A stretch of DNA of 64,000 nucleotides from Zygnema circumcarinatum SAG 698-1b (Eukaryota > Plantae > Zygnematophyceae): contig CM074809.1 of the NCBI GenBank assembly GCA_037447605.1, positions 3,586,689-3,650,688 of the forward strand, in the 5' to 3' direction. Under the pieces are notes generated by a model that saw nothing but the letters and a program-made list of their open reading frames with translations, was not told where the DNA came from and did not search any database. Shown here one piece after another: positions 4,158 through 33,701 of this stretch (the stretch's first letter is position 1; the number at the start of each line of letters is the position of its first letter). The position numbers and the translations under genes are program-made.

Positions 4158-4193
<36 letters not shown>

Positions 4194-5439: not shown

Positions 5440-5477
<38 letters not shown>

Positions 5478-6916: not shown

Positions 6917-6954
<38 letters not shown>

Positions 6955-9900
6955 CTGTGTCTCGCACTGTCTCTGTCTCTCTGCCACTCTCTGTGTCTCT
7001 CTCTGTTCATGTCGCCCTCTGTCTCTGTCTCTGTCTCCGTCATTTTCTGTCTCTCTCTGTCTCTATCTGTCCGTCTCTCTCTCTCTCTCTGCCCCTGCCC
7101 TATCTCTAGCTCACTCGCCCACGCGCGCTCCTCCCTCTCTCTCCGTGTGTCCGTTTTTTTTTTTTTTGCTGGCAGCAGAACATAAGCAATCGAACCTGTG
7201 GAGTCGTGGTTTGAAAAAAAAGCAGAAAACGGGACCGAAAAAAAAAAAGACATAGAGATTGGAGTTTTGAAACTTTTTTGAAACTTTTGAGGTCTTTGAG
7301 TCGACTGTGAAGGAGCCCCACTTACAGAGGTGAGTTCTGCCCGAAAAATTTCTGCCCGGAACGAAAAAAGAAAAGCCCGGGCAGCAAAAATATTGCGAGC
7401 CAAAAGGGAATGAATCCGCTGCCGGCTCCCGCCCAAGTGATCAGCTGTGACACGTGTCACACCCCATTTGTACCCTTCAGAAACTGTCAATTGGAAAACC
7501 CACATCACCCTAACATACGCTAAATTCCCTAAACCGTGAAGGTTGATAAAAGGCAAAGGAAGCAGCGGAACAATGGAAACCCTAATTCTGGAAACTGAAC
7601 AAACCCTAAAATTTGAGGTATGCCCCAAAAAAAAAAAAAACTCACTATGGCAGCGAAGGCGTTGGCCCCAATGGTGCCGCCCCAATGGTTTGACCACTCG
7701 ATTTTTACCTGTTCCATGAGCAAAGATCAGTTCAGTTCAGTTCAAATCCCAGTTCCAGTTCCCTTCCGTTCATTCGTTCGCTGTGTTTTGAAACAGCAGT
7801 TTCTATGCGAGGAAGGTTTCAGGAGCTTTACGGCAGATAGGTGTGAGGGTTTTGGGGAGAGGGGGAGAGGGGGAGAGGGAGGGAGGGAGGGAGGGAGGGA
7901 GGAGGGAGGGAGTGGCGGAGGGAGGGAGGGAGGGAGGGAGGGGAGGGAGGGAGGGAGGGAGGGAGGGAGGGAGGGAGGAGGAGGGAGGGAGGGAGGGAGG
8001 AGGAGGGAGGGGAGGGAGGGAGGAGGGAGGAGGGAGGGAGGAGGGAGGGAGGGAGGGAGGGAGGGAGGAGGGAGGGAGGGAGGGAGGGAGGAGGGAGGGA
8101 GGGAGGGAGGAGGAGGAGGGAGGAGGAGGGAGGGAGGGAGGGGAGGGAGGGAGGGAGGGAGGGAGGGAGGGAGGGAGGAGGAGGGAGGAGGAGGGAGGGA
8201 GGGAGGGAGGGAGGGAGGAGGAGGAGGGAGGGAGGGAGGGAGGGAGGGAGGGAGGGAGGGGAGGGAGGGAGGGAGGAGGGAGGGAGGGAGAGGGAGGGAG
8301 GGAGGGAGGGAGGGAGGGAGGGGTGGAGGGAGGGTGGAGGAGGAGGGAGGGAGGGAGGGAGGGGAGGGAGGGAGGGAGGGAGGGAGGGAGGGAGGAGGAG
8401 GAGGGAGGAGGAGGAGGAGGGAGGGAGGGAGGGAGGAGGAGGGAGGAGGGAGGGAGGGAGGGAGGGAGGGAGGAGGGAGGGGAGGATGGGGAGGAGGGAG
8501 GGGAGGGAGGAGGGAGGAGGGAGGAGGGAGGGAGGGAGGGAGGAGGGAGGAGGGAGGAGGAGGCAGGGAGGAGGAGGGAGGGAGGGAGGGAGGGAGGGAG
8601 GGAGGGAGGGAGGGAGGGAGGGGAGGGAGGGAGGGAGGGAGGAGGGAGGAGGGAGGGAGGAGGGAGGGAGGGAGGAGGAGGGAGGGTGGGAGGGAGGGAG
8701 GAGGGAGGGAGGAGGGGGGAGGGGAGGGAGGAGGGAGGGAGGGAGGGAGGAGGGAGGGAGGGAGGGAGGGAGGGAGGGAGTGGAGAGAGAAAGAGAAAGT
8801 GAGAGAGAGAGCGAGAGAGAGCGCTCGCTACCTGCTCCTCCTGTGAGAGCGGCTGCCCCCCTTTCGAGTAGCCCCCTCCCTGGCGGACTGCCTGCGGGAG
8901 GAGGAGGCCCGCCATGGCTGCCGGGACGAACATGAAGACAGCGACCTCGGGACGCGCGTTCCTGCAGCAGAAAGTTAGGGTTCAGGGCCAGAATTAGGGT
9001 TAGGGTATGAAGGCAGAGGTTAGGGTTCAGGGCGAGAATTAGAGTATATTGAGCAAAGAAAGGTCTGGACTGATGCTCGCAAAGACCACTACAACCCTAA
9101 AATTTTGTATGCCTAAGGTTCATGAGTGTAAGGAGGCTACTTCCAAACCCTAACGCTTACCAGCTCATGTAACGTTTAGATGAGGAGACTCGAACTATGG
9201 CGAGAAGGACGGGAAAAACAATAGCCAGGATCCAACTCAGAACATAAAAGAATCCTCCTGCATACAATTAGGAGAGTGACGGAACCGAGCCCTGCCCGTC
9301 ATTTGGGTCAGGTGAAAAAAAAAGGCACGCCCATGTTTTAAAAAACAATCCTAAAGCCTCAAAATGACTGAAGGGAGACTCACCTGTCACGAGTTCGTCG
9401 TAGCGCTTTGCAGGAGTCTCTGCTCCGGAGGTTGCCTTAGAGGCTAAATGTGGCATAAGGGAGACGAGGCCAAAAAGGGAGAAATGGAGAGCAAATGCAA
9501 TTGGTCGGGAATAGTAAACCTGCAAAAACCCAAATCCCAAACAAAAAGCAACAAAGGTATATTGGTACAATGTGTTGAAAGCATACAGAGTATGCAAAAC
9601 AACAAACATTGAGTCTGACCCATAACCACAACATACAATAGTTCATAGTATGACTCTCTATACAATGCGAAGCATGGGAAACGAATACGACAGGCCCATG
9701 CAAGCCATGCAAAGCGGCTTAATGCCGCCTTGACGCGTCACGGCCACAGGTCGCACGGACGTCAATCGAACGGCGGAGGCGGCGGTGCGACTGAATCGGA
9801 CGGCGCGCGATAGATTCGTCGCACCCACTGTCGCCGACCGTGCGATAGGACCAATGGACGAGTCCCGCGACCTATGCGACGATCCATGCGACGCCCGTGC

Positions 9901-14555: not shown

Positions 14556-14867
14556 GGCCTGTGGGGGGGAGAGAAAGGAGAGGAAGGAGCAAGGTGGACG
14601 AGAGAGGGAGGGAGGGAGGGGGGGCAGGAAGAGGGGAGGTGGGAGAGAGACAGCGAGAAGGGGTAGAAAAGTGGGAAAAAGAGAAAAGAGGATCGAAGGA
14701 GAGAGGGAGCGAGTGGAGGAGGGGCGGAAGAGAGGGGGAGGGACTTACTAGAGAGGGAGAGGAAGAGGAAGAGGGAGAGGGCGAGAGGGAGGGGGAGGGG
14801 GCGCGAGCGCGAACGCGTCGCTCTAAGCGAGCTTTCCTGGAACGGTCGCTTGAGGGAAAGGGTGTCC

Positions 14868-14955
14868 GTACATATGTATGTTTTCGTACGCCAATGTACG
14901 GCAGCTTACTGTACATGTTTACGTACAGTACAGTACGGGCCGTATGAAACTGTAC
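14868..14955. promoter_or_regulatory. GTAC-core cluster in the ERMP1/FMO divergent promoter
   Basis: 8 GTAC sites in 88 bp (14868, 14886, 14896, 14911, 14923, 14928, 14933, 14952). GTAC is the SBP-domain core site. Confidence 0.5.
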
Positions 14956-15072
14956 GAACAAATCAACGGAACGACAACAGACTGAGCCGCACGGAGCCTC
15001 GGAGGGAGGCATTACTCCGGCAAGGCTGCCACGTGGCGGCTTCCCGGGCCCCCTCGCCCTCGCACGTGCGAC

Positions 15073-18000
15073 ATGGCGGCAGCGTCCCTCTCCCTCCTCC
15101 CTTTGCGCTCTTGCGCTGCCATGGCTGCCCTCCCCCCCTCCCCCGTCCCCTCCCCCTCCCCCTCCCCCTCCCCTCCCCCCCGCCCCCTCCCCCTCCCCTC
15201 CCCCTCCCCCCCCCCCGCCATGGCTCCCACTCCCTGAAGGTCGCCGTCATCGGCGCTGGCGCCGCCGGGCTCGTCGCCGCCCGGCAGCTGCTCCGCGAGG
15301 GCCACCACGTGGCCGTCCTGGAGCAAGGCTCCCGCGTGGGCGGCACGTGGCAGTACGAGGAGCGCGCGGAGAGCGACCCCCTCTCGCGCGCGCCCTCGCG
15401 GGAGCGCGTCCATGGCAGCATGTACGCGAGCTTGCGCACGAACCTCCCGCGGGAGGTCATGGCGTTCAGGGACTTTCCGCTGTCAGTTTCAGTTCCAGTT
15501 CCAGTTGCAGTTGCAGTGGACGGGCGACGGTACTGCTCGCATGGAACGGTGGCGCGGTATCTGGAGCGCTTCGCGGAGGTGTTCGGGGTGTTGCCGCACG
15601 TGCGGTTCGGGAGGAGGGTGGAGGTGGTGGAGCCGGCGGAGGGGGGGAAGGCAGGAGGGGAAGGGTTTAGGGTTTTGGAGGGCGGGGGGAGGGGGGTGGA
15701 GAAGGGGGAAGGGTTTAGGGTTTTAAAGGGCGGGGGGAGGGGGGAGTGGGTCAAGTGGAGAGTGGCCAGTAGGGAGGTGACATTTGGCAGTGCGGTGGAG
15801 GAGGTGTATGATGCTGTGGTGGTCTGCAATGGACATTTTTCTGAACCCAAGATTGCTGATATTGCAGGTACTGTTTACTAGGGGGTGTTCAGGGTTTAGG
15901 GTTCTGGCTTCAAGTTTCAGAGTTCAGGGTGTAGAGTTGGCGTTCAAGGTTAAGGGTTCAGGTTGCAAGGTTTAGTTATCAGGTTGTAGAGTTTAGGGTT
16001 CAGGGTTTAGGGTTCAGAGTGTAGAGCTTAGGATTTGGATTTAAAGTTCAGGGTTTCTGGTTAGGGTTCAGGGTTCAGGGTTCAAGTTTAACCAAATGAA
16101 TTCTGTTTTTGGCGCAAGGTTCAACGTCTTGAAGGCTTGAGATTTAAGAACTCTTGAGGGTGTAGGGTTCAGAGTTTGAGGCTTCAAGAGTTAGGGTGTG
16201 CAGTTGGGGCCCAGGGTTGAAGGTTCTGATCCGGACTGCAGTGTTTTTTTAAAAAGAATGTCGAGGTTGAGCGTTGCAGGGTTCAGGTTTTATGTTGAAA
16301 GGGTTCATGGTTTCAGGGTTTTGTCTCTCACTTTCACTCTCTCTCTCTCTCTCTCTGTGCGGAGGGAGGGAGAGCAGGACTCAGTGAGTGGCCGGGCCGC
16401 CAAATGCACAGCCACAACTACCGCCGCCCTGAACCCTTCGCCGGACTTGTAAACTTCTCCGCCTGCTCTGAAATCCCTCCATAAATCCTTCGTCTCTCAC
16501 CACCTTGAGACAGAGAGAGAGAGAGAGGGGGGAGGGGGAGGAGGGAGGGGGAGGGAATCTCTCACATGAGACAGAGAGAGTGGGAGGGGCGGAGGGGGAG
16601 GGAATCTCTCACCATCCTTTGCAGCCCTAAGCCCTGACAAAACATTCGCAACCCTAATGACCCTACAACCTTGTAGCCTTAAACAATAGACCCCTGCAGG
16701 GGCTGAAACCCTAACCCTAAATTTCGTGCCGCGAGGATGCAGAGCAGGTGGTAGTGGTGGTGGGAGCGGGCAGCAGCGGGGAGGACATTGCCAGGGAGGC
16801 AGCCATGGCTGCTCGGGAGGTCCACATGTGCGCGCGCAGCTGGCCAGGTGCGGGAGGGGGAGGCTCGCCCTCTCCCACTCCCTCTCCCTCTCCCTCTCCC
16901 TCGCCGGGAGGGAAATATAAGAATCTGTGGCGACATCCCATGGTAAGAGAGGAGATGGAAGAACTGTGTTTGCCAGGGAGGGTTTGATTGGTTTTAGGGT
17001 TGCAGGTATTTTGGGGTTTGTAAGGATGTTAGGTTTTCTAAGATCTGAATTTCTGGGCCGTGAGAGATGTGTGCAGGCAGTGAGAGCGCATGCGGACGGA
17101 AAGGTTGAGTTTGCTGACGGCGTCTCAGTCGTTGCTGACGTCATTCTGCACTGTACTGGGTGAGAGTTTTTTTTTTTTTTTTGCTTTATGTTGTTAGTCT
17201 TGTGCACGTATTTACAAACTGCGTCGTTTTTCAGCCACGACATACTTTCGTTTTCTATTTTTTTTTTTCTTTGTCGAACAATTGATGAATGCTCTACAGA
17301 GAGCGAGCTAAAATGAGAGAGAGAGGGGGGAGAGAGGGAGTGATGGGCAGGTACATGTATCACTTCCCCTTCCTGAGGGGCATTGACCACTGCGTCAAAG
17401 TCTCTGACTCGCGTGTGGGACCACTCTTTGAGCATGTTTTCCCACCGACTTTGGCTCCCACTCTCTCCTTTGTGGGCCTCCCCTGGCAGGTAGAGAGAGA
17501 GGCCCTCCCACTGCATGCATGCATGTATGCATGCATGTACACTCTCTCTCTCTCGTACTCTCATGTTTTTCCATTCTTTTCAAAAAGGTCAATCTAAGAA
17601 TCTCTCTCTTTCTCTCTCCCTCTCTCCCTCTCCCTCTCTACCTTTCTCCCTATTTATAAGCACACCTCATGGTTCTCACGGACCTTGAGCGCATGTGATT
17701 TGTTAGAAGTCCTTAAGGGAGAGTTGATACCAAGGATATGAGCACACTGCAGGTGGCTCCGTTTCCCCTTATGGAGATTCAAAGCACGTGGATTGCGAAA
17801 GTGCTTTCAGGAAGTGTGGGGTTACCTTCGAGGGAAGAGATGGAGTCTGAAATTGAAACCTTCTATAAGCGAATGGAGGAGGCAGGCCTCCCGCAACGCT
17901 TCACTCACTCTATGGGGAAAACTGCCGTAGTGGGCCAGGTGCAGTGAACCTGCAACCCTATAAGCAGCTCTACTTTTCTGTAAGCATTTGTGCTCGTTTG

Positions 18001-19566: not shown

Positions 19567-20945
19567 TCAAGTCCAGCAGTAAGTCTTACAATCTACGGAA
19601 CCTTTGCTACCTAGATCTACATCTACGGCGACATTTACAGATCTAATGGCAAAAGCTGCCACTGGAAACAACCTCCAGTTCGTCCAGACTGGCTTAGCAC
19701 AAGGCAGTTGGTAAACTCTGAGAGACAGCTCGTCCTCATCTGGTTGCCCGCATGCAGCTCCATTTGTTGAAAAAGGCCTACTTTCCCTAAAGTACCTAAC
19801 TGACAAACTAACAAAGTAGCTAACTATCTAATCAACTAGCTAGCTGATTACCTAATTACTGATCGATTGACTGACTGGCTGCCTAGCTAATAACTTATCA
19901 ACTAAACCCTAGGACCAAACTCAAAAGAAACCTGACTGAATGATTGTGATTTGGAGTCCTGCTGGCCCGTCCACCTCTCAGCTGCAGCACGCAGCTGTGT
20001 TTGTATGGAACGGACAAGAAAGGGAGGGAGGTGAGGAAGTAGGGACTGAATTACTGGAGACTCTAGGAATCTACTGCGAGTTCTTCAATGGATGCGTTCG
20101 TCTAATGGTTCTCTACTGCCGCCGCATGCAGCTATCCGAAAAGCCTCGGCCTGCTCTAAATAGGATGCAACTACTCGCTCTGAGTAGAAGGAATAACCAA
20201 CAACTTGCTCGTCTAGAAAAAATCTCTCCTCACCTACTCCCAAGTGGGGTCCCGCGTAACCCTCCGCCTAAGCACGGTACACGTCGAGAGGGTGATGTCG
20301 ATTTTGACGCTGTTGAAATATACCTGCAGAGCAAAACATGCCAAAAGGGAACCAGAAAAGCCAAGCGCAACGCTTAGTATGCTTTTGAGAACAATCGGAT
20401 GATCCAGGCAACAAGAGCGGAGAGGGAGGGACAGGGAGGGGCAGAGGGAGAGGGAGAGGGAGAGGGAGAGAGCGCGGAGGAGGGGCCCTCACCGTCTCCA
20501 GGCAGCGGCTCTTGCAGGCAGTGGCCGGCCATGTACCGGAGAGCTGGCACCTCAAAATTTGCAAGTCTCAGTTCCCCGCCGGGAAGGTCTCCCTCTGCCT
20601 CTCCCATTCCGCCGCTTCGCCGCTGCATCCTCACACATAACAGCGGTAAGGGTTCCATTTAAGGTTGTTCCATGCGAAATTGGAAGCTTGTTTGAGTGTC
20701 CTCCTCACTGCCTGCTTCTCAATTCTGCGCGCTAAGTTCAAGGTTCAGGCGATTCCGATGCAAAAAAATCAGATTCTTTGGCCTCGGAGGGTGAAGAGAG
20801 CGCTCACATCATAGGTCAGTGGTGAAGCTGGAACTGGGAGCTGCGTCAGGAGGGGATGNNNNNNNNNNCTCACACTGTGAGCAGATGCAGGAGGAGAGAG
20901 GAGAGCTGTCAGGAGGAGGCGGCAACCATGGCGGGCTGCCGCCAT
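19567..20945 (-). pseudogene. Possible small orphan gene or pseudogene fragment, interrupted by a gap
   Basis: ccATGGC at 20945 starts MAAARHGCRLLLTALL (signal-peptide-like). Several AG/GT-bounded segments follow (~20840-20808, ~20610-20490, ~20325-20240, ~19790-19567), but I could not build one clean reading frame or recognise a family. Confidence 0.3.
20859..20868. other. Scaffold gap (10 N)
   Basis: N run. Confidence 1.
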
Positions 20946-21428
20946 GGAGCCTCCCTCCCTCCCTCCCTTTCTCCCGCCCTCCCCCTCGCCCTCCCCCACT
21001 TCCTCCACCTCTCCCTCCCTCTCAATGGCGCCCTCCCGCACACTGAGTGGGAGTCAGCGGCTCCATTTTATCCCCATGAGGGTCCACTCCGTTGTGGATT
21101 CAGCCTGGGATAAGTCCAATCGTGGAACGCCACGTGGACATTTCAGTCCACGTGGCGGACTTATTGGAGATGCATTCTGATTGGAGGGGCCGCGGCTCCA
21201 AAAATAATGCGATCTTCGCCCGTGTGTGACATATAAAAGTATGCAATGGCCTTGCGCCACGTGGCTCATTGCCGCATTTTGTGAGTCTCCGTACGATTTG
21301 CAGCAATAATTCTGATTTTCAAATGGGAAGGTACTCTGCCGTACGGTACGGACAGTGTCACGGCCCGTGACCTGCCCGGAGGGGGCACGACGATGCCCCC
21401 CGTGCCCCTGCCACGTCAGCGTACCCCG

Positions 21429-24400
21429 TCACAGCCGGGCCCCGACGGGGGCCTCGCGATGGGTAGGGCTCCGCCCCATGCTGAGGGAGGGGAGAGAGGG
21501 GAGGGGAGAGGAGGGGGGAAGGGGAGANNNNNNNNNNTTCAAGTTGGTCTTCTTGAACTGCGCTTGGTCCTTCTTGAACCACTTGGCGAGCAGGGCCAAA
21601 CACGTGTCGCCAGAGGCCACCGTGAAGACGGTCTTCGAGCTCCCCGTGCAGGCCCGCGCAATGGCCTCAAATGTGGTCGCCGAAGTGCATATCTGGGAAA
21701 TAAACAACCTCAACCAATGATATGGCAGGAGCAAAAGCAAGGGAAGCGAAAGTTGTTTCTTGTACGGAGTCTCTTTCTAAAACCTAAACAGCAATGGTGA
21801 CATTCCTCATGGCATCGGTTCTCTGGATTCAGATCGCAGAGTTTACGCAGCTTTACAAGTGTGAAATTGGCACAGGTGAGTGAATGGCCGCTTACCTCTT
21901 GCCCAAACGGAACAACACCACTCGTTGGAGGAACGAGGCGTGCGCAGTTGATGGCGGGGTTCACGGCATAGAACTTGGCGGCGGTTCCGTTGAACAGCGA
22001 CGTGACAATGCTTGCACACGTGTCACTCGCGCCGGCAACATACGATGCGTTGCAGAGCGGATTCTCCAATGGCGTGCCTCGCGTGATGCAAATCTGGAGG
22101 GTAATATTGTGAGAAAACTTCAACGATGGCGCCAAACATGGGTTTAAGTCGCTTGGAAAGAAAGCTGACTAATCCGACACTTTGAAAGAATCATCATTAC
22201 GATGTCCACTACAAGATGCTGAAATGGTGGTCATAATGCAGACCTTCGGTAGCCGAATTTGGTAACAAACCTGCTTTCCTCCCTGCAACGGGTTTGTGCA
22301 ATTGAGATTAGGGTTCTGGGAGTTTGTTCCCCCGAGGACTGTGCCAGCAGGGAGGTTGAAGAGGGCAGCAATGGAGGTGCATGTGTCGCCCTGCAGGAAA
22401 GATCAAAGCAATGGTCATATCAAATGACACAGAATTGAACAGAGAAGTTTCCAAAAGCGTCTAACGACATCCATGATGATGAATCGACAAAACGAATTCG
22501 TTCGTCAAAACCAACTGTCAACTGATTACCGGTCAAAATATCGAAAACCAGAGAATAGACAATACCTGATTGATAGTGTACGGGAGCGAACAGCTCCATG
22601 AGTTTGTGATGTTTATCAGAGTCGAGGCAGGGAGGACATTTGAGCAGTTAACACTCTGCAATCGCCGACAAACAAACATGTGTCAAATTCAAAAGTCAAG
22701 GAACTCAATGCATTCCAATGCTGGCAACAAAGATGTTCGCGGGTCGGGCTGCAATTTACGAAACAGACAATACAAAAAGACCAATCTCGGCCATAGACAC
22801 TCACTGGACGCTGCTGACGTATGAAGGCGGAGATGCTGATGCCATGCACATCCGCCAAGAGGTCGCAAGTCACTATCGGACCGGCAGGAACACTGAAGCT
22901 CTGAAGGCCCTGCAGAGGGGGCACACCTGCACAATGGCGGGACATAGAATGTTATTTCCTGCATCACATTTCTAAGGAAACAGGAAACCATCAACCTTCT
23001 TCAGAGCAGACAGTTTCGTTAAGTTTCAGTTCTTCCGTTTGCACTTTGAACATTACTTTTCGCGAGGATGTAGTCGGCGACAATGGTACATCGGAATCTG
23101 GCAAAGCTGCTTGGGACGAATGTTCTAGAGGGTTCTTGAAGTGGCATGAGGAAGCCTACCAGAGCGACACGTGGCACTACCGTCAAGGGTGTACTGAGAG
23201 AGGCTAAACCCCGAGGGGCAGAGACACGTGTACGCGCCGGAGGAGCTGCTGATGTCGAGGCACAGTCCAACGCCGCACGGGTTGGAAGAAAAGGACGCAC
23301 AAGTTGACGCTGCAGACATTAAAGAAAGAAATAGGGGGGAGGAGCGGCGAGAGGGGGGAGAGGGCGTAAAAGAGAGAGAAGGAGAGGACGAGAGAGAGAG
23401 AGGTGGGTTAAGAGGACGAGAGAGTGGGAAGGAGAGACAGTCTTCTCAGAACGAACCATCTTATTCACGCCCTACGCATGATGAGAGCCGTGCTGCATAC
23501 TGCTAGGGTGCTGTTACTTTCTAGAGTTTTTCAGGGTTTGTCAACGTTACATAACTTCACTAGATCATATCAGCACTACCCAACATGCTATGAAGATGGG
23601 CTTACCGGGAATGCAGGTCTGGGAGCCATCGCTGTTGTTGGCGGCAGCGAAGTCGGCGGGGCACAAGCAAACATTGGTGAGGCCGGAGACGGTGCATGTT
23701 CCCCCCCCGCAAGGGTTGGAGGTCCCCGCTCCCACACTGTTGTTGGGGAGCTTTATGGCGCCATAGCTATTGGAGCCGCAGGGGTTGCTTCCTGCATGCA
23801 GATGACGACAAGGAGTCATAAAAAAGGAATTGAAATAGTAATTTAATTTGGAATTACATTACTGTGGGTGTTCTCATGCTTGGTTGAATTTGCAGCACAA
23901 CAACTTATATTCGTAAACGAACAGGGAAATAGCGAAAAAATGCCCCCAGAGGAGCTGGCGGAGCCTCTCACCCTTGACAATGGGAACAAGAGCAGGAGTG
24001 CTAAACATTCCACACGTGCCCACTCCTCCTCGGATGGAGATTCGCATGAACCCTCCCTCACCCCAATTGATGCCCCAAGAATTTTTTATCAACATATACG
24101 GAGGAGTTGTTGTCAGATTGTAGCCTAGCACCACCACATTGTGGTTCACGCCACTCTTATAGCATGTGGGGTTGTCATAGATATAGCCCTGCACATTTAC
24201 AAGGAAAGTGTAAGCTCGATTCTCGTACTACGGAACAAAAATATAAAGGACGTGTAATTTCGAAAATTATCACATAGTGAATATGGTTTTTGTTGTAAGG
24301 AGGTTTCCAGGTTCATCTTTCAGGTTATCCCTTTATGCTTGTAGGGATCGCTCGCTTGTAGTGAATGTAGCATTCCTCACCCCCTTGTAGTCGATGAAGG

Positions 24401-27400
24401 TAGGGGCAGAGGCATCAATGGAGACTATGACCGGCCCTTGTAGGAGTGCCAGGAAGATGCCCAGCAGTCCGAAAAATCGCACTTTTTCGTATGATGAAAT
24501 GCCAAACGCTCCGGAACCCTGCGCTTAATATTGGAGCAGGCACATAAGGTTTGCTGTGTGAGAAAAAACTCAAAACAACATCGGGTGATTGAACTTGTCG
24601 AACACCCACTTTGGAAAGTATTGACAGAGGGTGAAAGCGAAAATAGGCCAACTTCTGGAGTTATCTGCAAGAAACAATCAAATCTCTGAGAACCCTCGTG
24701 TTTTCTAGTTTAAAGTGCACCCTTTATTTGAAGAGAGGCTTAGTGGAAGTCAAGGACATTGAATTCCGCGGCTCAGCCAAAGTATTGTCATAAGTGAAGG
24801 ATTCTTAAATGACTCACCGAGACAACATTACATGCTTGAGGAGTCCCGCTGTATGGCAGAGCGGCTTCAGTGGTCAGCTTCTGCCCAGCTGCATACTCCA
24901 AAACATCGATTGGGGAGCCTCCACTACAGGGCTTTGAAGTCCCCTGGCAGTCCAAAATTTGCTGCACGGAGACCTTAGGAAGAACATTGCCTCCATTTGC
25001 AATGTAGATGGCAGTCTCCATGGATGAGATCGGAGCAAAAGCCCAGCTGGAACCTGAAGATTGTAAGAGGATGCAGTGGAGCATGAGCTCAATGTGTGTG
25101 AAGTGATTACTTACGGTTTTATATCACAGCCTCACAAATTTCGAGTCGCAGGATTCGCAGTGGATACTTGCACTCATGTGACTTAGAAATTTCTAAGGAC
25201 TTAACCCATCACCTCAGTGTACGCTGATGTACACCGTTTTCGGATGATTGATAGGCGTAAGCGATTCTTGAATGTAGTTAATTAGAGATTCCTTTGCAAA
25301 AATTTCATCAGCAAACCAAGCTCTTATCACACCTCATAACTGGTAACCTAAATCTTTGCCGACCTTGAGAAGTATTGCAACCTACCGCACGTCTTCTGGT
25401 CGCGCACAGAGCCCGCGCCTCCCTGCTCTGCCCAGCTCCACTGCGGAGGCACACTCCACCTGCCGTTAGCAGCGCTATATCCCAAACTCGAATAGCGGAA
25501 GAATCGGTCTGAGTATCTGGGAGTAGTGATGGCGGAAGGGGCCAAACCCGTGCCCTTTGTGCCAACTGCATCACGACCACAAAAGATCGAAATTTTACAT
25601 CATTTTCCATCGACATAGCCCCCTGCGAGTGGGACCGGCTGCCGTAAGCGATGGGATCTAAGAGTTCATGTAAGAATGGGAACAATGGGAAACAACTACA
25701 TAAAGGAGGGGCTCGAAATGTTTGTTTTCAACTGACTTTCCACTGTTATTTCTCATTGGGAACATAAGTTTTCAACCGGATCCTGACCATTCTCATTGTG
25801 ATTGCTTCTGGAATATGAGACTCCGACGATGAAATCCTTGACATGAAGCTGCTTTTTCAAACTACAGAAAGCTGAAGGTGCCTACCAGCCACGCAGATTC
25901 CGCTGTTGATAAAGCTGTTGTAGCCGAACACGCAACTGCATGCAGCCGCCGGCGAGGCTCGGGTTCGAAGGCATGTCCCCTGACTCGAGCACGCGCCCAA
26001 GGGCTGAGTCGTGTTGCAAAAGGCAATGCATTCGGAGAGACTCCTCTGCGTGTCTTGGGGACAGAACAGATCTTCGCTGAACATGCAGTTGTTCGCAAGA
26101 GCACCCGCGGATTGGCAGTATCTTGAATTGCTGTCATACTGGTAATAAAACGTAGTCGTACCATTAAAGTAGTTGTTTCTCAAGTCTACAAATACTTTGT
26201 CATAGGTCCATGTGTTGAACTGTCCCGTTAAAAAGTTGTTTTGAAGCCACCTGCAAAAGGAGCCAGACTGTGTTTAGGTCCAGAGGGAGGCAAGTCCGTG
26301 AAAGTTCACAAGAGCATGTGCAAAGTGTTTGTTGAACAACTCATTTGACGCACATTAGTTCGAATTTAGTGTTCAAGTAAACACCATGCATTAGGTTACA
26401 GGAGAAGGGACACATGGCTTACAAAACAGAAGGGAGGCGAGATGTAGGCACGGTCCCAACAAGTTCATTATCATTCAGATATCTGCGCAAGTAGAGGACG
26501 CCTTTTAAAAGGAAATGGAGCATACATAGTCTGTTTTCGCTGAATGATTGAAGTGCTCTACCGAAAATTGATTCGAAATCGAATCGACGTTCAACTGATT
26601 TCGAAAGTTTTTTTTTTTTGAACAGCCAAAATCTTTACTTGTTCAATTTTTCAAACTGCATAAATATCAAGCCCTCAGCAGGCTAAGACCAGCATCCCAA
26701 GATATCTGGAGTCAGAATGGGAAACCCAGGGACACTCACATTGAAAACATCCCTGCGTAGCTATCCAAATAGTTCGGTGGTATGCTTGTGAGCCTGTTGA
26801 AGCTAAGGTCCCTGCCAAACATTTCATACGATATCTAATCGTTAGCAATTTCCAGAGACCTCCAAAGTCCTTTCCAATACCGCGGTATGTTCAAAGAAAC
26901 TGAGATGGTCAGCTTTAGAGGTCTGAGTCATACAACGTCCGTGTATAATATCCGACATACGCAGGAACTGCTCCTGAGAAGTTGTTGTTATTGAAATACC
27001 TGCGACAAAATGCACATTTTCAAACGGTATTCATTGATGGCAATCTAAATTTCCGATTATCGGCATCGATCGCCTCAAATGAATTGAACACAAATTCATT
27101 CTTACAATGATATATGTGTCACCTGTAGCGTGCGAATGGGTATGATCAATCGACCAATTCAGCCCCCCGGGCTGAACACAGAAATTTGTCCACATAATTT
27201 TCCAGTCAGCAAGTGGGTTAGAGAGCTCACAGGCGCATCCAATAGCAACAGTCGGGGAAACGAGGAATAGTGCCAGTCAGCTGGTTGTAGCTTAAGTCCC
27301 TGAAATTCCAACCCACTTTGAAGGAGGTCAATCTTTACATCAATCTCTTGTATTATTTTGACCTGATGAGCCAAATCTTTTTTAGCGTTCTCACACCGAA

Positions 27401-30400
27401 GAGCTCTGTGAGCATTCGTGATAGATTGTTTTGCTCACATGTAGCGCACGGAGGTTGTCGTAAATTGTGGTAATATTCCAGTAAGCTGGTTGTTTGACAT
27501 GAGCCTGATGATAACAACGACAGTCGAAACCGTTAAGAATCGGAACTAACTTGTGATCGAGAGAAGTGAAAAGTTCTCAGGTTGAATCGAAAGTAAGATC
27601 ATGTGATGATCGATCATTTTTCATACGTACATTCGAATGTTCCTTCCAAAAAGTTTATTTGAGTACACTCACAACACATAAATTGATAGTTTGGTGAGTG
27701 TGGTTGGGAAGCTCCCGTTGAACCGGTTCCCTTGAAGATCCCTGGCATATGCGTCCATTGCGCATACAGAAAACATGAGAGGGAGAGCTCAACTGTATTC
27801 TCAAGCGCTCATTTTCTACATAGGAGGTATCGCGTGTAAATAGAGAATTGAAAACGACTTACAAATACTGGAGGCTGCCAAGTTTGCTGAATGTGGTTGG
27901 AATCGGACCAACGAGATTGTTGTTGGCAAGGGTCCTGTGGGCCGAAAAGCCAAACCTTGGAGGGCTTCATGAGCCATGAGGGGCACATGCATGGCAATCG
28001 CTAGGACCTTTCGAAGGAGCCACAATGTGAATCTTCAACTCGTCATGTTATACAGAAATGAGTCCCCAGCCTATACTCTTGCAACGACCATCTACGAATG
28101 CAAAAACAAGCAAGGATTTTCCCTCACAAAAAGTTTAACGAAGCCAAGTCTCCAATGCTTGCTGGAAGTACTCCGCTCAGGGAATTATTTGTCAAGTACC
28201 TGCACAAACCCGAGCCAAAAAGGAATAGTGAGCTATGGCAAGGCAAGGGTATGCAGTCAAAGACGGAGCCCCACCATCCTTTCCAAGTGCAAGAGAGGTC
28301 TCATCCTCCAAAAGACAGAAGGAAAAAATCTGAAGAAGAAAAAGTTCACGCCCAAATGTAAGCGGAACAGAAGGTAGCTTTGATTCCCCTTCGTCCTTGG
28401 TCTCTACTGTATCTCAGTGAGACACTTACAACCCAATCATAGATGTGGCTTTGCCGATCTCAGCAGGAATGCTTCCGATTAGTTGGTTCTCTACCGCGGA
28501 CCTGAAAAGGAAGCCATAAATTTTTAAGATCCTACTCAAGGGCAGTGAAAAGTGAAGTGCATTGCAAACACGTCTTGAATTGCAACTACTAAATTTCAGT
28601 CAGGATATAGGCACCTTTGTTTCCCTATGGTATTCAAAGTACAAAGGGAAGAAGCGCAAAGAAATAAAATGGGTCAGTACTCACAGGTACTGGAGATTGG
28701 ACATTAATTTGACAGTTGTTGGTATCGTGCCAGTGAGTGAATTCGTATCAAAGGTTCTGTAGGCATAAAAGAAGAGCGTGTCAAGGGTATTGCATCTGAA
28801 AATGACACGTACAGCGACAAGCTGAGCTCTATTACCTCTCGGACAGAACTAACGTGCATGATTTCGTCCTTATCATAACCACAGATTCCCCTGAGAAGCA
28901 CACTTCCACTTACACACTGTTGAGATAAGTAAGACTCCCAATAGAGGCTGGTATCCTTCCGGACAATCTGTTGTTATTTAAGGATCTGTAAGGTGGCCCA
29001 TGAAAGAATAAGAACAAAATGTTAGAGAACTATGCATTATCGAAGCGGGTTTCATGCTCAAAATAACAGCCATGTCTTCCGGGGAGCTTGGGCAACCAAA
29101 AGAAATGCCACCCTTGGGGCTAAATCAAGACATTTACTGCCCCGTCTGGCAAGAAGCTTTTGCCTTATCAGCGTTTCTTCAATAATGTCATTCCACAAAG
29201 AATATTGCAATCTTCTTGCCAAAATAATGACTTGTTGTGCGATTCGATTACACCAAAATGCGCTCGGAGGAATCAAGGAACTTCTCACAAGTTAATCAAA
29301 TATGTGATGTTGCCGATGCTACTGGGAATGGTGCCAGTGAGCTGGTTTGAACCCAGGTCCCTGCCAACAGATCAAACATCAAAGGGGTATTGGGTGCAGT
29401 CAACAGCCTCGGACGTACAGCAGGTAGTCACAAGCGCCTCACGTGAAAGTAAAGCAACGGTTAGCTTGGAAATCTTCAGCTTTTTCTGAAGATTTCTGAG
29501 AATTGACAGAACAATGACATCCAGTTGCTTGGAAGCTTCTCGCCTTCAAATTCTGCCACATGAAAAGTCAAACCATGACGATGGAACAAAACAATTGCTT
29601 CATGACAACGATGCCTAGATACGTGCACTTCATTCCAGGTTCTAAGTGAGGGCAAATTGCAAACTGGACAAGAATTCTTCAGAAAGCGAAGTATATGTGA
29701 ACTAATCAAAATTACATGCCAATGTGCATTGCCGAAAAGCATAGGGGTCCCCCAACACCTTCCCCAAAATTTTCAACCGTGTTCGCAGACTCATCATATC
29801 TTCTCTGTGAATGGATGGCGTGAACCAAGAAAGATTGCCAAATGGTTGAGCTGCAAATTTAGAAGAGGAAACACGTTTCAACAGCAAAGCGAGCGGAACC
29901 GTACAAGTATCGCAAGCCTGTCATATTGCCAATGTCTTCTGGTATGGGGCCGCTGAGGCTGTTGCCGGATAGTTGCCTGTCACCCCCATGTGGAAAAGCG
30001 CGAATACATTCAGGTTCATCCAGGCCATTGTCAAACTATGCACCACATTTGACCCACTTTAAAAACTATTTCTTTTCGAAAACAGGTTATCTACTGAGGA
30101 CCAAAGCGTCGCAGTAGTGCCTGAACTCGTAGTAAACAGATGCTGGATTAGTAAGAGATCGGTTAGACGTACAGCGAGTAAAGGTTTTGAAGTGCGCTCA
30201 GTGATGCTGGTATACTTCCATTCAGCGACATGGAAGACAGATCTCTGTGCAGCCATGAGGACGAGTTTCAAATTTTGCATTAATTCCAGTCCTGTAATAG
30301 CTGACATTGTACCTATGACGACTGCAACGACCACAACTCCCTAAACAATGAATAAATCACGTGAAAACGCATCCATGTGCGAAAAACTTTAGATACCATG

Positions 30401-33400
30401 AAAATGGCAGGCATAACAGGATCATTTCGCTTAAGAACTCGTATAGAAGTTGAAACAAACTAGCAGTAACGTTTTGAACGATGCTTTGGATGCTTTCTTG
30501 ATACTGGCCGATACTGATTTTTACATGGAGACAGACAAACCTATGTACCTTTCCACTCAACACAGGCACAGATCTAAAAGTTGTCTGCAAAAATCAATTG
30601 TTGAGTACGCACAGTGTCGAGAGATAGATCATGTTGCCGATGGATGACGGTATGCTTCCGTAGAGATTGTTGGGATAATTGATCACCCTGACGTCATCCC
30701 AAAATCCACCATTTTAACATCTTTTTGTGCTACACACACCATCGGAAATAAACTGTCACCACCGTACGAGCTAATTCGATGGCAATCACTGAAGGGGGTT
30801 CCAGCATGGCAGGCATGATTGTTATCTTTAAGATTTTCTCACATTTGGAGGACACATCGGACATCTCAGGCGTGTACAGATACTCAAGAGTGATCCATAA
30901 GGTCTTGCGAGGGTTATAAAGGATAGAAGAAGATCATCAATAGCATACAAAAAAAATCGCTCGCTACTGCATCAAATGGAGATGGGAAAGTGAACGTAAA
31001 TAGACTTACAGACTTCCCAGCGCAGTAAGGTTCCCAATGTTTGCGGGAAGTTCTCCGGTAAGAAAGTTGTTTGCCAAATTTCTGAAACGTGAAAACGAAT
31101 GTACCATAGACATGAGCATTCTGCAATCGCTTAAACTATTTTTCCTTATGTCAGGAAGATTTTATTTGTGCGGCTCAGGGATTTTAAAGGGTGCACCGAT
31201 AGAACCAAAAGAGCAGTGACGCAACAAGACAAACATGCAGAGTCATTTCAGATATTTTTTCGTCGCAAAAAACGGCACTTACAAGGAGGCTAAGTTAAAC
31301 ATGTTTCCAAACGTGGCCGGTAAGGTTCCATCCAAAGCATTGTCCTGAAGCGATCTGGTGTAAAACCCGAAACTCACCGAAAGCCATACTTTAGGAACTT
31401 CTAATTCTAAGATCTGCATCATGTGTGTGATGCTCTCACCATATGCCATAAAGTAAAACAAATTTTTAACAGGAGAGAATGAGGAAGCCCAACAAGGCAG
31501 TTAAATATCCTCCAACAAGTCATGTAAAACTCAACACTGCACTCCCGCTGAAAAACTCAAGTTGGCTTGATTTCTCAAGTCACTATTGAAGCTGAGCAAA
31601 AAACTATTCCATCAGCGTGCGTAGCAAATGCATAATGCATGCACGATGTCCACTTACAAGCTTCTAAGGTTTACAAGATTTCCAAAGGATGAAGGGACGG
31701 ATCCTGTAAAGTAGTTGTTAGCCAATGATCTGCAGACAGGCCAGTATATCAATTAGATCCTAAGAATATTCGCAAAAGAATTTAATCGCATACATTCTTA
31801 CAAAAATCACGCCTCCGATACACTGCACCCTTAAATAGCCCATTTCAAACGGTATTGAAATACTCACAAGTCAGTCAACATGGTGGCGTTTCCAAGACTG
31901 TCTGGAATGGGACCTGTCAAGCGGTTATTATACAGATACCTGCCGATGAGCCCAAAAAGCACGCATGGCGCCAGGAAATTAGACATGAGTGAACCAGAAA
32001 TAAGTGCAATGGCAAGTGCATCAGTAGCAAGAAACGCAAAGTACCAAAGTAGAGGCATATATGAACTTACAATACCGTGAGCTCCTCCAGTTTATTTCCA
32101 AAAGTTGATGGCAGTGATCCAAACAGCTTGTTGTCATTCAAATAGCTGACCTTGCCTCTCCCACAATCCGCACTTTTGTGTTAATGGTAAAACTGACTGG
32201 CTAGAATTGCATGCATTCGGTGACATCACACCGATTGCTCTTTACTTCTAAATCACAGCTTGCCTCCTGCAGAGCACCAGTCTGGGGTTTTTTTGACTGG
32301 CTGATTCAATACATCGAAGCAGCATGCGCTTGTTTACATGCATTGAATGCTGGACAACACGTTATTACAAGGATAAAAAATACTGCTGAGTAACAACTGA
32401 CCAGTTTCTGGGACTAAGTCCTAACAACACAACGTTTTACAACCCAAAGCATCACCACCATCACACCTTCCTCCCACCCGCCCTCCCTCCCTCACTCCGT
32501 CCCCCCTCCCTTCCTCCCCCCCGCCCTCCCCCCGCAGACCCTCCCTCCCTTCCTCTCTCACTCCAATGGCGCTCACATGTTTTGCGCGTTCACAAGGTCG
32601 CCAAGCTCCGCTGGGATTTGTCCTGTCAGCTGATTACCTGCGAGATTCCTGGCAAAAGAGCAGCAGACCAAGGAGCGATAATCCACTAGACATTATCTTC
32701 TGCCGTTACAGCCTCCACGCTAAGCAAGTACAGCCACTAATCGCGGACAAAAAATAGGGAGAAACAAATTTTCAAACTTTTTAATCAACGAATGAAAAAT
32801 TAATGCTCGAAAACTCGAAAAACATAATCATCTCACTTACAAGGTGACGAGATTGACAAGTTTCCCTAAGCTCGACGGTATTCTCCCCGTTAACCTACAG
32901 TTGCTAAGATCCCTGCAACCAATGCAATAGTAACAGATGGTGATGTGAGGCACGCCAGACGTCACCAAGCCACATTTGCGTACCTTTCCGGTAAGTTCTG
33001 CCTGAATCCAACATCTCAGTAGAACCATCAAGCGCCATCTATGTAGCAAAAATATCGAAAAGGTGCAAAGCTTGATGTCTCCAGACAGAACGAGAGAGCC
33101 TCTCACAATTTTGTCAGGCTGATGATGTTTGAGAGCCCCTCAGTGAGCCGCGACTGCACGTTCCTGCAGCCATATAGGCACTTCCTTTATCAGGCATTAC
33201 CCGGACAAGCAGCCATGGTTAACCACATTTTCAACTGAGTCTTTTCCTCCTGTGCCGCAACGAGACTGGTCAAAAAACCAGAGATCTTTCAAAACCAGAC
33301 ATGACCCTGAACCCTAAACGGCCACCTCTGCAGGGTCCAGTCCTTACGCAAGATTGAGCTCCACGACCTGCCCGCCTTCGCAGACCACATTCGCCCAGTC

Positions 33401-33701
33401 GGCGCAGTCCCGCTTCGGCTCCCACGTCTGAAAGGACTCCCAATTCCACCACAAGTTCGCTGCCTTGAACTCCAAAAGCGCCGGCACTGAGCCGCTCCCC
33501 TCCCCCCCACCCCCCGCCACGTGTCAGCCATTCCCTCCCTGCCGACGGGCTTCAGCCATGCCCACGTGGCAGGGGGGGGCGCTCCGTACGCTGCCACGCA
33601 ACGATGGGTTCGGCGGCGGAGGGCGCCGCGGCGAGCACGTGCAGCAGCAGGGCGAGGAGAGCCCGCCACGTGGCGGCACGGGAGGAGGGCGCCATGGCCA
33701 T
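21429..33701 (-). CDS. Secreted mosaic protein: signal peptide - LRRNT - ~20 LRR - EGF-like - papain (C1A) domain with catalytic Cys>Ser - EGF-like repeats - 4 LysM; about 33 exons
   Basis: Exon 1 (33701-33590) MAMAPSSRAATWRALLALLLHVLAAAPSAAEPIVAWQ; exon 2 (33486-33348) LRRNT W..W....C..W..V.C; then LRR, C1A, EGF and LysM exons, all with canonical GT-AG and compatible phases. The 3' end is uncertain because of the gap at 21528-21537. Confidence 0.9.
21528..21537. other. Scaffold gap (10 N) at the end of the last LysM exon
   Basis: N run. Confidence 1.
21538..22926 (-). other. Four tandem Cys-containing LysM domains (exons 22926-22805, 22655-22566, 22390-22271, 22093-21896, 21692-21538)
   Basis: FSVPAGPIVTCDLLADVHGISISAFIRQQRPSVNC; CSLPYTINQGDTCTSIAALFNLP..NPNLNCTNPLQGGKQIC; CNASYVAGASDTCASIVTSLFNGTAAKFYAVNPAINC..GQEIC; FTVASGDTCLALLAKWFKKDQAQFKKTN. 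Confidence 0.8.
23160..23791 (-). other. EGF-like exons (23791-23606, 23309-23160)
   Basis: NPCGGGTC..VCLCPADF..QTC and NPCGVGLC..YTCLCPSGF..ATC. Both are phase 1-1 exons. Confidence 0.85.
23972..25565 (-). other. Papain-family (C1A) domain exons (25565-25386, 25053-24818, 24518-24381, 24188-23972)
   Basis: WSWAEQGGAGSVRDQKTCG|SSWAFA, SVQQILDC..CSGGSP, GPVIVSI, VNHNVVVLGY, IKNSWGINWGEGGFMRI..GTCG. Confidence 0.92.
26140..33163 (-). other. Plant-type LRR array, one repeat per phase-2 exon
   Basis: 17 exons of 66-75 bp (12 of exactly 72 bp), e.g. 32912-32841 DLSNCRLTGRIPSSLGKLVNLVTL, 31939-31868, 31729-31658, 31354-31283, 31081-31010, 29976-29905, 29360-29289, 28985-28914, 28756-28685, 28501-28430, 28199-28128, 27934-27863. 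There is also a 57-bp first LRR exon and two more repeats in exon 26250-25886. Confidence 0.92.

Follow-up and report, generated by a model that had tools for sequence, protein, structure and literature searches.

Our analysis shows that one gene on the minus strand of the window (the whole 64-kb stretch of DNA under study) is expressed, comprises 37 exons or more and is predicted to encode a protein of some 1,360 residues that is secreted and soluble. The exon model runs from an ATG at 33701 to the edge of an assembly gap at 21538; every one of its introns is bounded by GT and AG, and the spliced coding sequence up to the gap edge (4,025 nt, 1,341 codons) contains no stop codon, an outcome with a computed probability of about 1e-28 for that number of random codons. 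A first-pass annotation had proposed a single splice-compatible exon chain here, and the 37 GT-AG exons bear this out and assign it to the minus strand, which had not been stated. The encoded modules are, in order, a signal peptide, an LRRNT-like cap, 25 LRRs, a Cys-rich/EGF-like cap, a short linker that resembles part of a propeptide, a C1A (papain-fold) domain, a pair of EGF-like modules and four LysM modules. A plus-strand gene in the region was also considered and was rejected because coherent exons are absent on that strand.

Exon 1 (33590–33701) carries the ATG and a predicted signal peptide of about 27–30 residues and ends at a predicted phase 1 donor, GTACGG; in a hydrophobicity scan the peak at residue 16 is the sole one outside the C1 core. 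Exon 2 (33348–33486) encodes, by pattern match, an LRRNT-like cap (C..W..V.C) followed by the first beta-strand. The LRRNT named in the first-pass annotation stands as this pattern and through a relative: Pfam gave no match on the 45-residue LRRNT piece of exon 2, and the homologue P0164 has LRRNT_2 (PF08263) at the equivalent position. Between 26423 and 33163 lie 23 single-LRR exons of 57–75 nt (mostly 72), all in phase 2 and supported in part by RNA. Exon 26 (25886–26250, joined by RNA) completes the LRR run with two more repeats, which are followed by a Cys-rich cap and a weakly matching EGF-like module. The repeats are of the plant type, as had been claimed (consensus LxxLxLxxNxLxGxIP), and the earlier count of about 20 becomes 25. 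The protein thus resembles the plant LRR receptor kinases and RLPs (GSO1, FLS2, PEPR1; Cf-2 type) in having a signal peptide, an N-cap and a long run of 24-residue LRRs, and the LRR head of the homologue P0163 matches the ectodomains of GSO1 and FLS2 at 1e-121 and 1e-117, respectively. It differs from those receptors in that its model, up to the gap edge, has neither a TM helix nor a kinase, in that its LRRs are followed by EGF-like, papain and LysM modules, and in that nearly each LRR is its own 72-nt phase 2 exon.

The linker and the start of the C1A domain (Gln19 and Cys22) occupy exon 27 (25386–25565), and exons 28–30 (23972–25053), connected by RNA joints, encode the papain-fold core. Pfam Peptidase_C1 (PF00112) matches two of the exon pieces with 56.2 and 53.5 bits (E 6.8e-15 and 4.4e-14; cut-off 20.7), and a sequence search of the PDB finds papain and cathepsins. 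The active-site alignment shows that Gln19 (DQ..C), His159 (VNHNVV), Asn175 (KNSWG) and the GG motif of substrate binding are kept, and the model translation has all six cysteines of the disulfides. The predicted model of P0163 aligns to papain, actinidin and ervatamin with Z of about 30 and rmsd of 1.5–1.7. The linker exon matches no Pfam family and carries the motif FR[YH]xSxG[YF], which is also in the family consensus; in the P0163 model the linker, judged by the ranges aligned to zymogens, overlays the C-terminal part of their propeptides. An I29 prodomain (PF08246), which cathepsin L-like C1A enzymes usually have, was found neither on the linker exon nor in the full Pfam scans or precomputed Pfam lists of the homologues.

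The papain-like fold claimed in the first-pass annotation is therefore present, but is this copy a protease? The codon at the position of the catalytic Cys25 is AGC (25048–25046, minus strand), so that the CGSCW motif is replaced by C-G-S-S-W-A-F, with Ser as the nucleophile residue. All RNA contigs that cross this site begin to match at 25048 or higher, and none of the differences listed, a list that leaves out 11, falls on the AGC codon. The secreted plant C1A enzymes (papain, RD21 and the Rcr3/Pip1 group) share with the window protein the fold, the Gln, His and Asn residues and the disulfides, and they differ from it in having the nucleophile Cys and the I29 prodomain and in having no recognition modules fused on both sides. 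Because of the Ser, the word protease is doubtful for the window copy. Identities were also compared domain by domain as a gauge of C1A decay; the ratio of C1A to LysM identity for the window protein lies towards the low end, 0.97–1.26, which speaks clearly neither for decay nor against it.

Exons 31–32 (23160–23791) hold the two EGF-like modules downstream of the C1A domain, and exons 33–37 (21538–22926) hold the four Cys-bracketed LysM modules, the fourth of which is truncated by the gap; both groups are connected by RNA joints. Pfam was run on exon pieces of the window gene and on the homologues, and the spliced protein was compared with a family profile. The Pfam EGF match at 23161–23307 (27.3 bits, E 4.4e-6, cut-off 21.5) is a six-cysteine EGF module, and the other two EGF-like modules are weak (EGF in exon 26 at E 0.026, below the cut-off, and hEGF at 23607–23789 at E 0.086). 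The LysM exon pieces reach 17.5–18.4 bits, short of the Pfam cut-off of 20.9 since every module is interrupted by introns; Pfam gives the LysM modules of the homologues E-values of 1e-14 to 9e-28, and the family four-LysM profile A1 matches model residues 1114–1340 at 216 bits (profile positions 5–228 of 247). When this profile is compared with solved LysM structures it matches the fern/horsetail chitinase-A LysM (5bum) at 1.4e-10 and Ecp6 at 4.8e-8, both of which bind chitin, and the LysM of LytE (8i2e) weakly (E 0.074). Cys-bracketed LysM modules are shared with the LysM chitin binders (5bum, 4pxv; Ecp6 4b8v), to which the CEBiP/LYM proteins also belong, and unlike these the window protein is very large, has four tandem C-terminal LysM modules and has no chitinase domain. 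The bacterial LysM plus NlpC/P60 endopeptidases (LytE/LytF) follow the same logic, with LysM repeats taking a papain-like-fold hydrolase to a GlcNAc polymer, yet their peptidase family and domain order are different and they are bacterial enzymes that act on the cell's own wall.

Is the gene transcribed as one unit? The RNA evidence consists of Logan contigs, which are short, from four runs (three studies). Twelve CT..AC joints, present in up to four of the runs, chain exon 24 (26740–26811) to exon 37, so that the last LRR exons through the last LysM exon are covered; joints 26482/26740 and 25565/25886 (exon 27/exon 26) are present, loose ends at about 26250/26421–26423 supply the joint between exon 26 and the adjacent LRR exon, and contigs link 26811 to exon 23 (26934–26999, also by loose ends). 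Exons 1–22 rest on prediction and on the share of words in run X1, which holds 0.17 of the sampled words of 27000–33701, by rough estimate about the exon-only expectation. The single transcription unit that had been proposed is in this way upheld by in-frame RNA joints from exon 23/24 to exon 37. A conceivable alternative is that the fusion is an artefact, in which an adjacent LRR gene and a C1A-EGF-LysM gene were joined by read-through, by paralogue contigs or in a decaying pseudogene. Several features would fit such an origin: no contig in the RNA set spans the whole gene (the Logan contigs being short), many contigs are just 95–99% like the reference, in which two expressed haplotypes seem to be mixed, the depth of the LRR exons is lower in runs X2, X3 and X6, and X1 is the sole run listed for the 5' half. 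The 3' exons are 2–3 times deeper than the 5' exons in some runs, which may reflect 3' bias or additional shorter transcripts. Against an artefact, the joints that connect LRRs to cap, cap to linker and linker to C1A have canonical splice sites, keep the frame and reach the depth of those within the C1A domain (90 versus 90–194 in run X3, and 29 versus 25–49 in X6), the reading frame is open throughout, and depth-2 contigs that cover introns match the reference exactly, so the RNA runs do contain the window locus. Purifying selection is also evident: 21 of the 33 coding differences between the expressed haplotypes and the reference are synonymous, versus 24% expected (p 1.5e-6), and within the C1A domain, which is under purifying selection, the value is 17 of 25 (p 4e-6). 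Finally, independent annotations of Closterium, Mesotaenium and Spirogloea contain the same collinear fusion, which several transcriptome assemblies also show. We consider an artefactual fusion very improbable.

The 3' end of the gene lies at an assembly gap (21528–21537), which, judged from the RNA and from the C-termini of homologues, would hide roughly the last 19 codons and the 3' UTR. RNA contigs reach 21538 and then run on for 91–255 or more letters (medians by run; 255 or more in X2). These letters match nothing in 20869–21527, and the first 30 of them, which are absent from the entire window, stay in frame and give the ten codons N-W-A-C-D-D-N-K-L-V. Since the RNA past 21538 is unlike the DNA left of the gap, the transcript does not join the two flanks of the gap. 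A model that reads through the gap to a stop at 21429, the low end of the interval given in the first-pass annotation, was rejected because the RNA exits the assembly at 21538 and because depth left of the gap is low (0–26 versus 260–450 in exons); the tail that such read-through would add resembles the C-terminus of no homologue. The interval 21429–21527 is not part of the gene. All of the compared homologues that reach the C-terminus end 18–21 residues past model residue 1340, which predicts a stop roughly 19 codons past the gap edge, inside the gap. The last exon was also used as a query for short protein fragments that might hold the missing C-terminus, and no candidate came up. A TM or kinase tail beyond the gap was rejected as well: no kinase motif occurs in the six frames of the window, the homologues end shortly past the gap edge, and none of those compared has a GPI-signal-like or TM-like hydrophobic tail. 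In the 1,341-codon model up to the gap edge the only TM-like stretches are the signal peptide and a segment buried in the C1A core, and the earlier description of the product as secreted, with no TM or kinase exon, agrees with these observations.

The first-pass annotation had described the protein as an all-in-one mosaic. It does not stand alone: it is a member of a multi-copy family which, in the databases searched, has so far turned up in zygnematophytes only. The search of algal proteomes for LRR, Peptidase_C1 and LysM together that had been proposed was productive: the C1A-EGF-LysM chassis occurs in Closterium, Mesotaenium and Spirogloea, headed by LRRs or by a legume lectin. Collinear homologues found by BLASTP include P0163 (39% identity over 1,115 columns), P0167, P0164, P0157, P0121 from Closterium and P0073 from Spirogloea. 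In such homologues Pfam recognises LRR, Peptidase_C1, EGF and LysM, and in variants a Lectin_legB head takes the place of the LRRs. Members share a collinear C1A domain, two EGF-like and four LysM modules, an end shortly past LysM4 and a variable head, so that the family layout, as read from these sequences, is a constant C1A-EGF-LysM chassis with a swappable N-terminal head (LRR or legume lectin). The window protein falls in a clade of nine members with SH-aLRT of 97%. Database labels of the family proteins are "unnamed protein product" or "hypothetical protein", and the annotated protein for the window locus is absent from a representative library of 1.84 billion proteins, in which the best match has 41% identity over 78 residues. 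A literature search over 8.4 million papers found no paper on these proteins and no characterised protein that fuses LRR, C1A and LysM, as had been claimed, and the family is apparently undescribed. The pairing of C1A and LysM by itself was on record from 2019, when Van Holle and Van Damme surveyed lectins and listed green-algal "Peptidase C1A / LysM" mosaics, with C1A and several LysM modules in a single chain; they note that the pairing was not retained in vascular plants (PMC6362431). The further modules in those entries are SRCR, C-type lectin or galactose-binding ones, with no LRR mentioned, and the survey held no zygnematophyte genome and no functional test of these proteins (PMC6362431).

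Most family members have the catalytic Cys, and six of about 43 are of the Ser type; the five of these that were placed in the tree require at least four independent changes. Kept His and Asn together with a repeated change to Ser only would fit a working Ser-His-Asn hydrolase and a non-catalytic binder equally. The first of these, an active serine-type hydrolase (a protease or an acyl/condensing enzyme) that the LysM modules bring to glycans, we regard as possible but rather doubtful. It would account for the retention of Gln19, His159, Asn175, the GG motif and all of the disulfides, for the purifying selection on the C1A domain and for the fact that every independent replacement in the tree (four) went to Ser and to no other residue. 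In sponge silicateins a Ser-His-Asn triad works within a cathepsin L fold, and the cathepsin-silicatein chimera 2vhs is among the structural matches of the homologue model. Arguing against catalysis, Cys25Ser papain is nearly inactive, one expressed junction variant alters the two residues immediately before the Ser, which suggests a relaxed active-site loop, and the Ser-type Closterium protein P0186 also lacks Gln19. Cysteine-type and serine-type members coexist as well in the papain-fold SERA family of Plasmodium, where the serine-type members are held to be non-catalytic or weakly catalytic regulators, and the serine-type SERA5 is termed a pseudoprotease in the reference list of that source, which also speaks against catalysis (PMC7529260). 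SERA proteins such as SERA5 are of an unrelated lineage and have another architecture, without LRR, EGF or LysM, so the likeness is one of analogy only.

The reading that we favour, at slightly better than even odds (about 0.55), is that the protein is a secreted, probably non-catalytic recognition protein in which the LysM modules dock on GlcNAc polymers, the LRR head adds a second specificity and the Ser-type papain domain binds more than it cuts. Soluble pattern recognition, decoy and cell-cell recognition, the functions suggested in the first-pass annotation, remain candidate roles. The four LysM modules would dock the protein on chitin of fungal or chytrid parasites or on peptidoglycan, the LRR head would supply a second and probably proteinaceous specificity, and the papain domain, its cleft kept, would probably bind peptides or inhibitors and not cut efficiently. 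The Ser-type copy may then be a non-catalytic partner or regulator beside its Cys-type paralogues, in the manner of serine-type and cysteine-type SERA. A role of the LysM modules on the alga's own glycans is also possible. An explanation built on such a role, in which the protein acts on the alga itself in adhesion or remodelling of wall or mucilage (for example in conjugation or division) by binding self glycans and proteins, seems to us unlikely. It would suit the confinement of the family to conjugating green algae in the databases searched, the assembly of the gene's transcripts in the four RNA runs used (culture conditions unrecorded), and the presence of EGF-like and lectin modules, which are common in adhesion proteins. 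However, the LysM domains of known structure that come closest belong to a chitinase of plants and to an effector of fungi, and the number of copies and the exchange of heads are what one would expect of recognition proteins that evolve fast. Moreover, the Logan family member P0196 carries PF00187, the hevein chitin-binding domain, which points to chitin, a polymer not known from zygnematophyte walls.

To our knowledge, LRR ectodomains, LysM binders and secreted papain-like proteases are separate proteins in land plants. Here these three pillars of land-plant surface immunity are joined in one algal polypeptide, an LRR, C1A and LysM fusion as the first-pass annotation had recognised, and the algae nearest to land plants maintain an entire family of them, in which the heads can be exchanged and the protease modules are of the Cys type or the Ser type. 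The family offers a clonable system for asking in what way recognition outside the cell worked before the rise of receptor kinases, and which role a papain fold takes on when serine replaces its cysteine. A more specific proposal, which we hold to be quite unlikely, is that the Ser-type papain domain serves as an integrated bait: it would be an inactive copy of Cys-proteases that the alga itself secretes, set in an LRR/LysM recognition scaffold. Were it true, parasite protease inhibitors or surface proteins would be trapped on the microbial wall, the recurrent births of Ser-type members would be repeated decoy evolution, and the protein would be a one-polypeptide forerunner of the land-plant pair of LRR receptor and guarded papain-like protease, of which Cf-2 with Rcr3 is an example.

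Further copies of the gene inside the window were sought by tblastn and none was found, and the ORFs downstream of the gene are low-complexity repeats and a plus-strand FMO-like gene.

Reading of the plus strand between 20000 and 36000 gave no coherent coding pieces. The minus strand, read in order, opens with what resembles a signal peptide and then shows LRR segments, motifs of papain, Cys-rich segments and finally stretches similar to LysM. From predicted GT-AG sites and RNA-supported joints we built a gene model of 37 exons (4,025 nt; 1,341 codons with no stop) that runs from an ATG at 33701 down to 21538, the edge of an assembly gap (21528-21537); the chance expectation for a stop-free frame of this length is about 1e-28. 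The protein begins with a signal peptide, an LRRNT-like cap and 25 LRRs, of which 23 have an exon each and two lie in exon 26; then come a Cys-rich/EGF-like cap, some 55 residues of linker, a papain-type (C1A) domain, two EGF-like modules and four LysM modules. The locus is one gene, and the single exon chain proposed by the first-pass annotation holds; its LRRNT is represented by an LRRNT-like cap, recognised by sequence pattern, with Pfam silent on that exon. The LRR exons (26423-33163) hold one repeat each, are almost all 72 nt long and have phase 2 on entry and exit, so that the frame would survive exon skipping or duplication. Exon-skipped forms were not seen in RNA within 26400-26868, the only LRR part covered by placed contigs.

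Of the words sampled from 21538-27400, six RNA-like runs from the same organism contain 0.23-0.28, by rough estimate about the exon share. Contigs from four runs (three studies) were placed on 20869-26868 and give twelve canonical joints (CT..AC as read on the plus strand). Through these, exons 26740-26811, 26423-26482 and 25886-26250 are tied to all the following ones, the last being 21538-21692; loose contig ends give the 26250/26423 joint and link 26811 to exon 26934-26999. The gene is expressed, and splicing of its 3' two-thirds agrees with the model. The exon chain originally claimed is thus traced in RNA from LRR exon 26934-26999 to the last LysM exon, and exons 1-22, which lie beyond the joint-level RNA, are modelled from the uninterrupted frame, run X1 (word share 0.17) and collinear homologues. 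No single contig spans the whole gene because the contigs are short. The joints running from LRR through cap and linker to C1A have a depth of 90 in run X3 (versus 90-194 within C1A) and of 19-29 in run X6 (versus 25-49); since these depths are similar, the fused form is the main form in those runs. That the fusion is an artefact of assembly or read-through is unlikely. In several runs LysM-exon depth is 2-3x that of the C1A and LRR exons (21538-26868), which may reflect 3' bias, cross-placed paralogues or shorter transcripts. The contigs sort into two or three variants that resemble haplotypes and differ by about 5%; the reference is a patchwork of these (24854-25012, 25046-25053/25386).

Contigs in all four runs reach 21538 and then run on for 91 to at least 255 letters (medians by run, the latter in X2). 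These letters have no match on 20869-21527, and the first 30, which are absent from the whole window, keep the frame and encode N-W-A-C-D-D-N-K-L-V, as would be expected where a LysM module ends. Contig depth is 260-450 in the last exon and 0-26 on the left side of the gap. The unmatched overhang and the drop in depth indicate that the gap flanks are not continuous in the transcript, so the read-through ORF to a stop at 21429, the low end first given for the gene, is ruled out and 21429 lies outside it. One further short terminal exon may lie past the gap edge. A low-depth X2 contig in the 21027-21527 region follows the assembly to 21439 and then diverges for at least 255 letters; 20869-21026 and 21483-21527 are flagged repeats, and the stretch that borders the gap on this side may be a misassembly or belong to one haplotype.

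All compared homologues that reach the C-terminus end 18-21 residues past the position matching model residue 1340, which for the nearest of them is seven residues beyond the end of the RNA letters, and the spliced protein matches a family LysM profile (247 positions) up to position 228. There are no kinase motifs in any frame of the window and no TM-like stretch in the model, and downstream there are low-complexity repeats and an FMO-like gene on the plus strand. The homologue ends, these two negative scans and the downstream content together make a TM or kinase tail after the gap very unlikely, in agreement with the original report of no such exon; the C-terminal end itself is predicted from homologues. 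The encoded protein is of the secreted type and lacks a membrane anchor.

Pfam finds one EGF module above its cut-off (the other two are weak), and the LysM exon pieces score just under theirs because introns split every module. A LysM profile was therefore built from the homologues' C-termini; it matches chitinase A LysM domains from horsetail and fern (5bum, 1.4e-10; 4pxv, 1.6e-7) as well as Ecp6, a LysM protein of fungi (4.8e-8), and the spliced protein fits it at 216 bits, in keeping with the four LysM modules claimed. These modules would dock on GlcNAc polymers, and the LRR head, which in the nearest homologue is of GSO1/FLS2/PEPR1 type, would supply a second specificity. Action on the wall of the alga itself, or in mating, is a less likely alternative.

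Pfam Peptidase_C1 matches two exon pieces of the C1A domain (6.8e-15 and 4.4e-14). The claimed papain domain is therefore present as a fold, with its nucleophile motif reading C-G-S-S-W-A-F and Ser (AGC, 25048-25046) in place of the usual Cys; Gln19, His159, Asn175, the GG motif and six disulfide cysteines are retained. Among the differences listed, the AGC codon is unchanged in the RNA contigs placed across it. The junction ahead of it occurs in three RNA forms (reference-like, synonymous, and one altering the two residues immediately preceding Ser), all with AGC. Expressed variants differ from the reference at 33 coding positions, 21 of them synonymous (24% expected, p 1.5e-6), and within C1A the count is 17/25 (p 4e-6); this excess argues that the Ser-type domain is maintained rather than decaying, and it is under constraint. 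The domain would bind, not cut; an active Ser hydrolase, with His159 and Asn175 in place, is unlikely. The observation underlying the first-pass annotation is confirmed, and its interpretation partly supported.

Pfam is also silent on the linker exon (25386-25565), so there is no I29 prodomain. In an AlphaFold2 model of the C1A-EGF-LysM part of homologue P0163 (pLDDT 77.8, pTM 0.80), the protease superposes on papain-type enzymes (Z about 30), about 30 additional residues align with zymogen structures, and the linker, with a conserved FR[YH]xSxG[YF] motif before mature C1A (P0163:557-604), coincides with the C-terminal stretch of the propeptides in zymogens. This hints at a mini-propeptide, and only hints, because part of the linker has low model confidence.

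The protein itself is absent from the protein libraries searched (best match 41% identity over 78 residues). The LRR-C1A-LysM architecture is nonetheless present, annotated or assembled, in several Closterium strains (e.g. CAI5959345.1), Mesotaenium endlicherianum (ME000166S01720), Spirogloea muscicola (SM000281S10751) and several EukProt transcriptomes (best P0163, 39% identity over 1,115 columns). Other members join the same chassis to a legume-lectin head or to lectin plus LRR, with lectin heads in at least two clades, and one Logan protein also carries PF00187, the hevein domain. Beyond the family, matches fall to ordinary cathepsins, and our searches returned no land-plant members. Sequence comparison places the gene in a family of zygnematophytes whose members differ in interchangeable heads; both architecture and family appear to be new, and the member described here has an LRR head and a Ser-type domain. 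Ser-type domains occur in 6 of about 43 members, and the five placed in the tree need at least four independent changes. Plasmodium SERAs likewise include cysteine-type and serine-type papain homologues within one family (PMC7529260). A full-text literature search found no paper describing an LRR-C1A-LysM protein, in keeping with the claim that none is characterised, and a domain-history paper leaves the architecture unmentioned. The C1A+LysM mosaics that a 2019 lectin survey reported in a green alga, and as absent from vascular plants, differ in lacking LRRs, with no functional test reported (PMC6362431).

In Closterium sp. Naga37s-1, P0001 (CAI5502628.1) and P0153 (CAI5502627.1) have consecutive accessions on one contig, and P0001 contains the LRR-C1A unit twice, which means either a tandem array of family members or an annotation that fused two genes. 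P0186 of the same strain has two Ser-type C1A domains, both with Gln19 changed to Glu, an active site more degenerate than that studied here.

Elsewhere in the window, a long plus-strand ORF (14850-15881) encodes a dinucleotide-binding motif like that of flavin monooxygenases (V-A-V-I-G-A-G-A-A-G) and probably represents exon 1 of a neighbouring gene on that strand. Two minus-strand ORFs (4106-6220 and 6351-7697) share identical N-terminal ~370 residues and flank a gap at 6406-6415, and GGA/GAG-type low-complexity tracts lie at or close to all four gaps.
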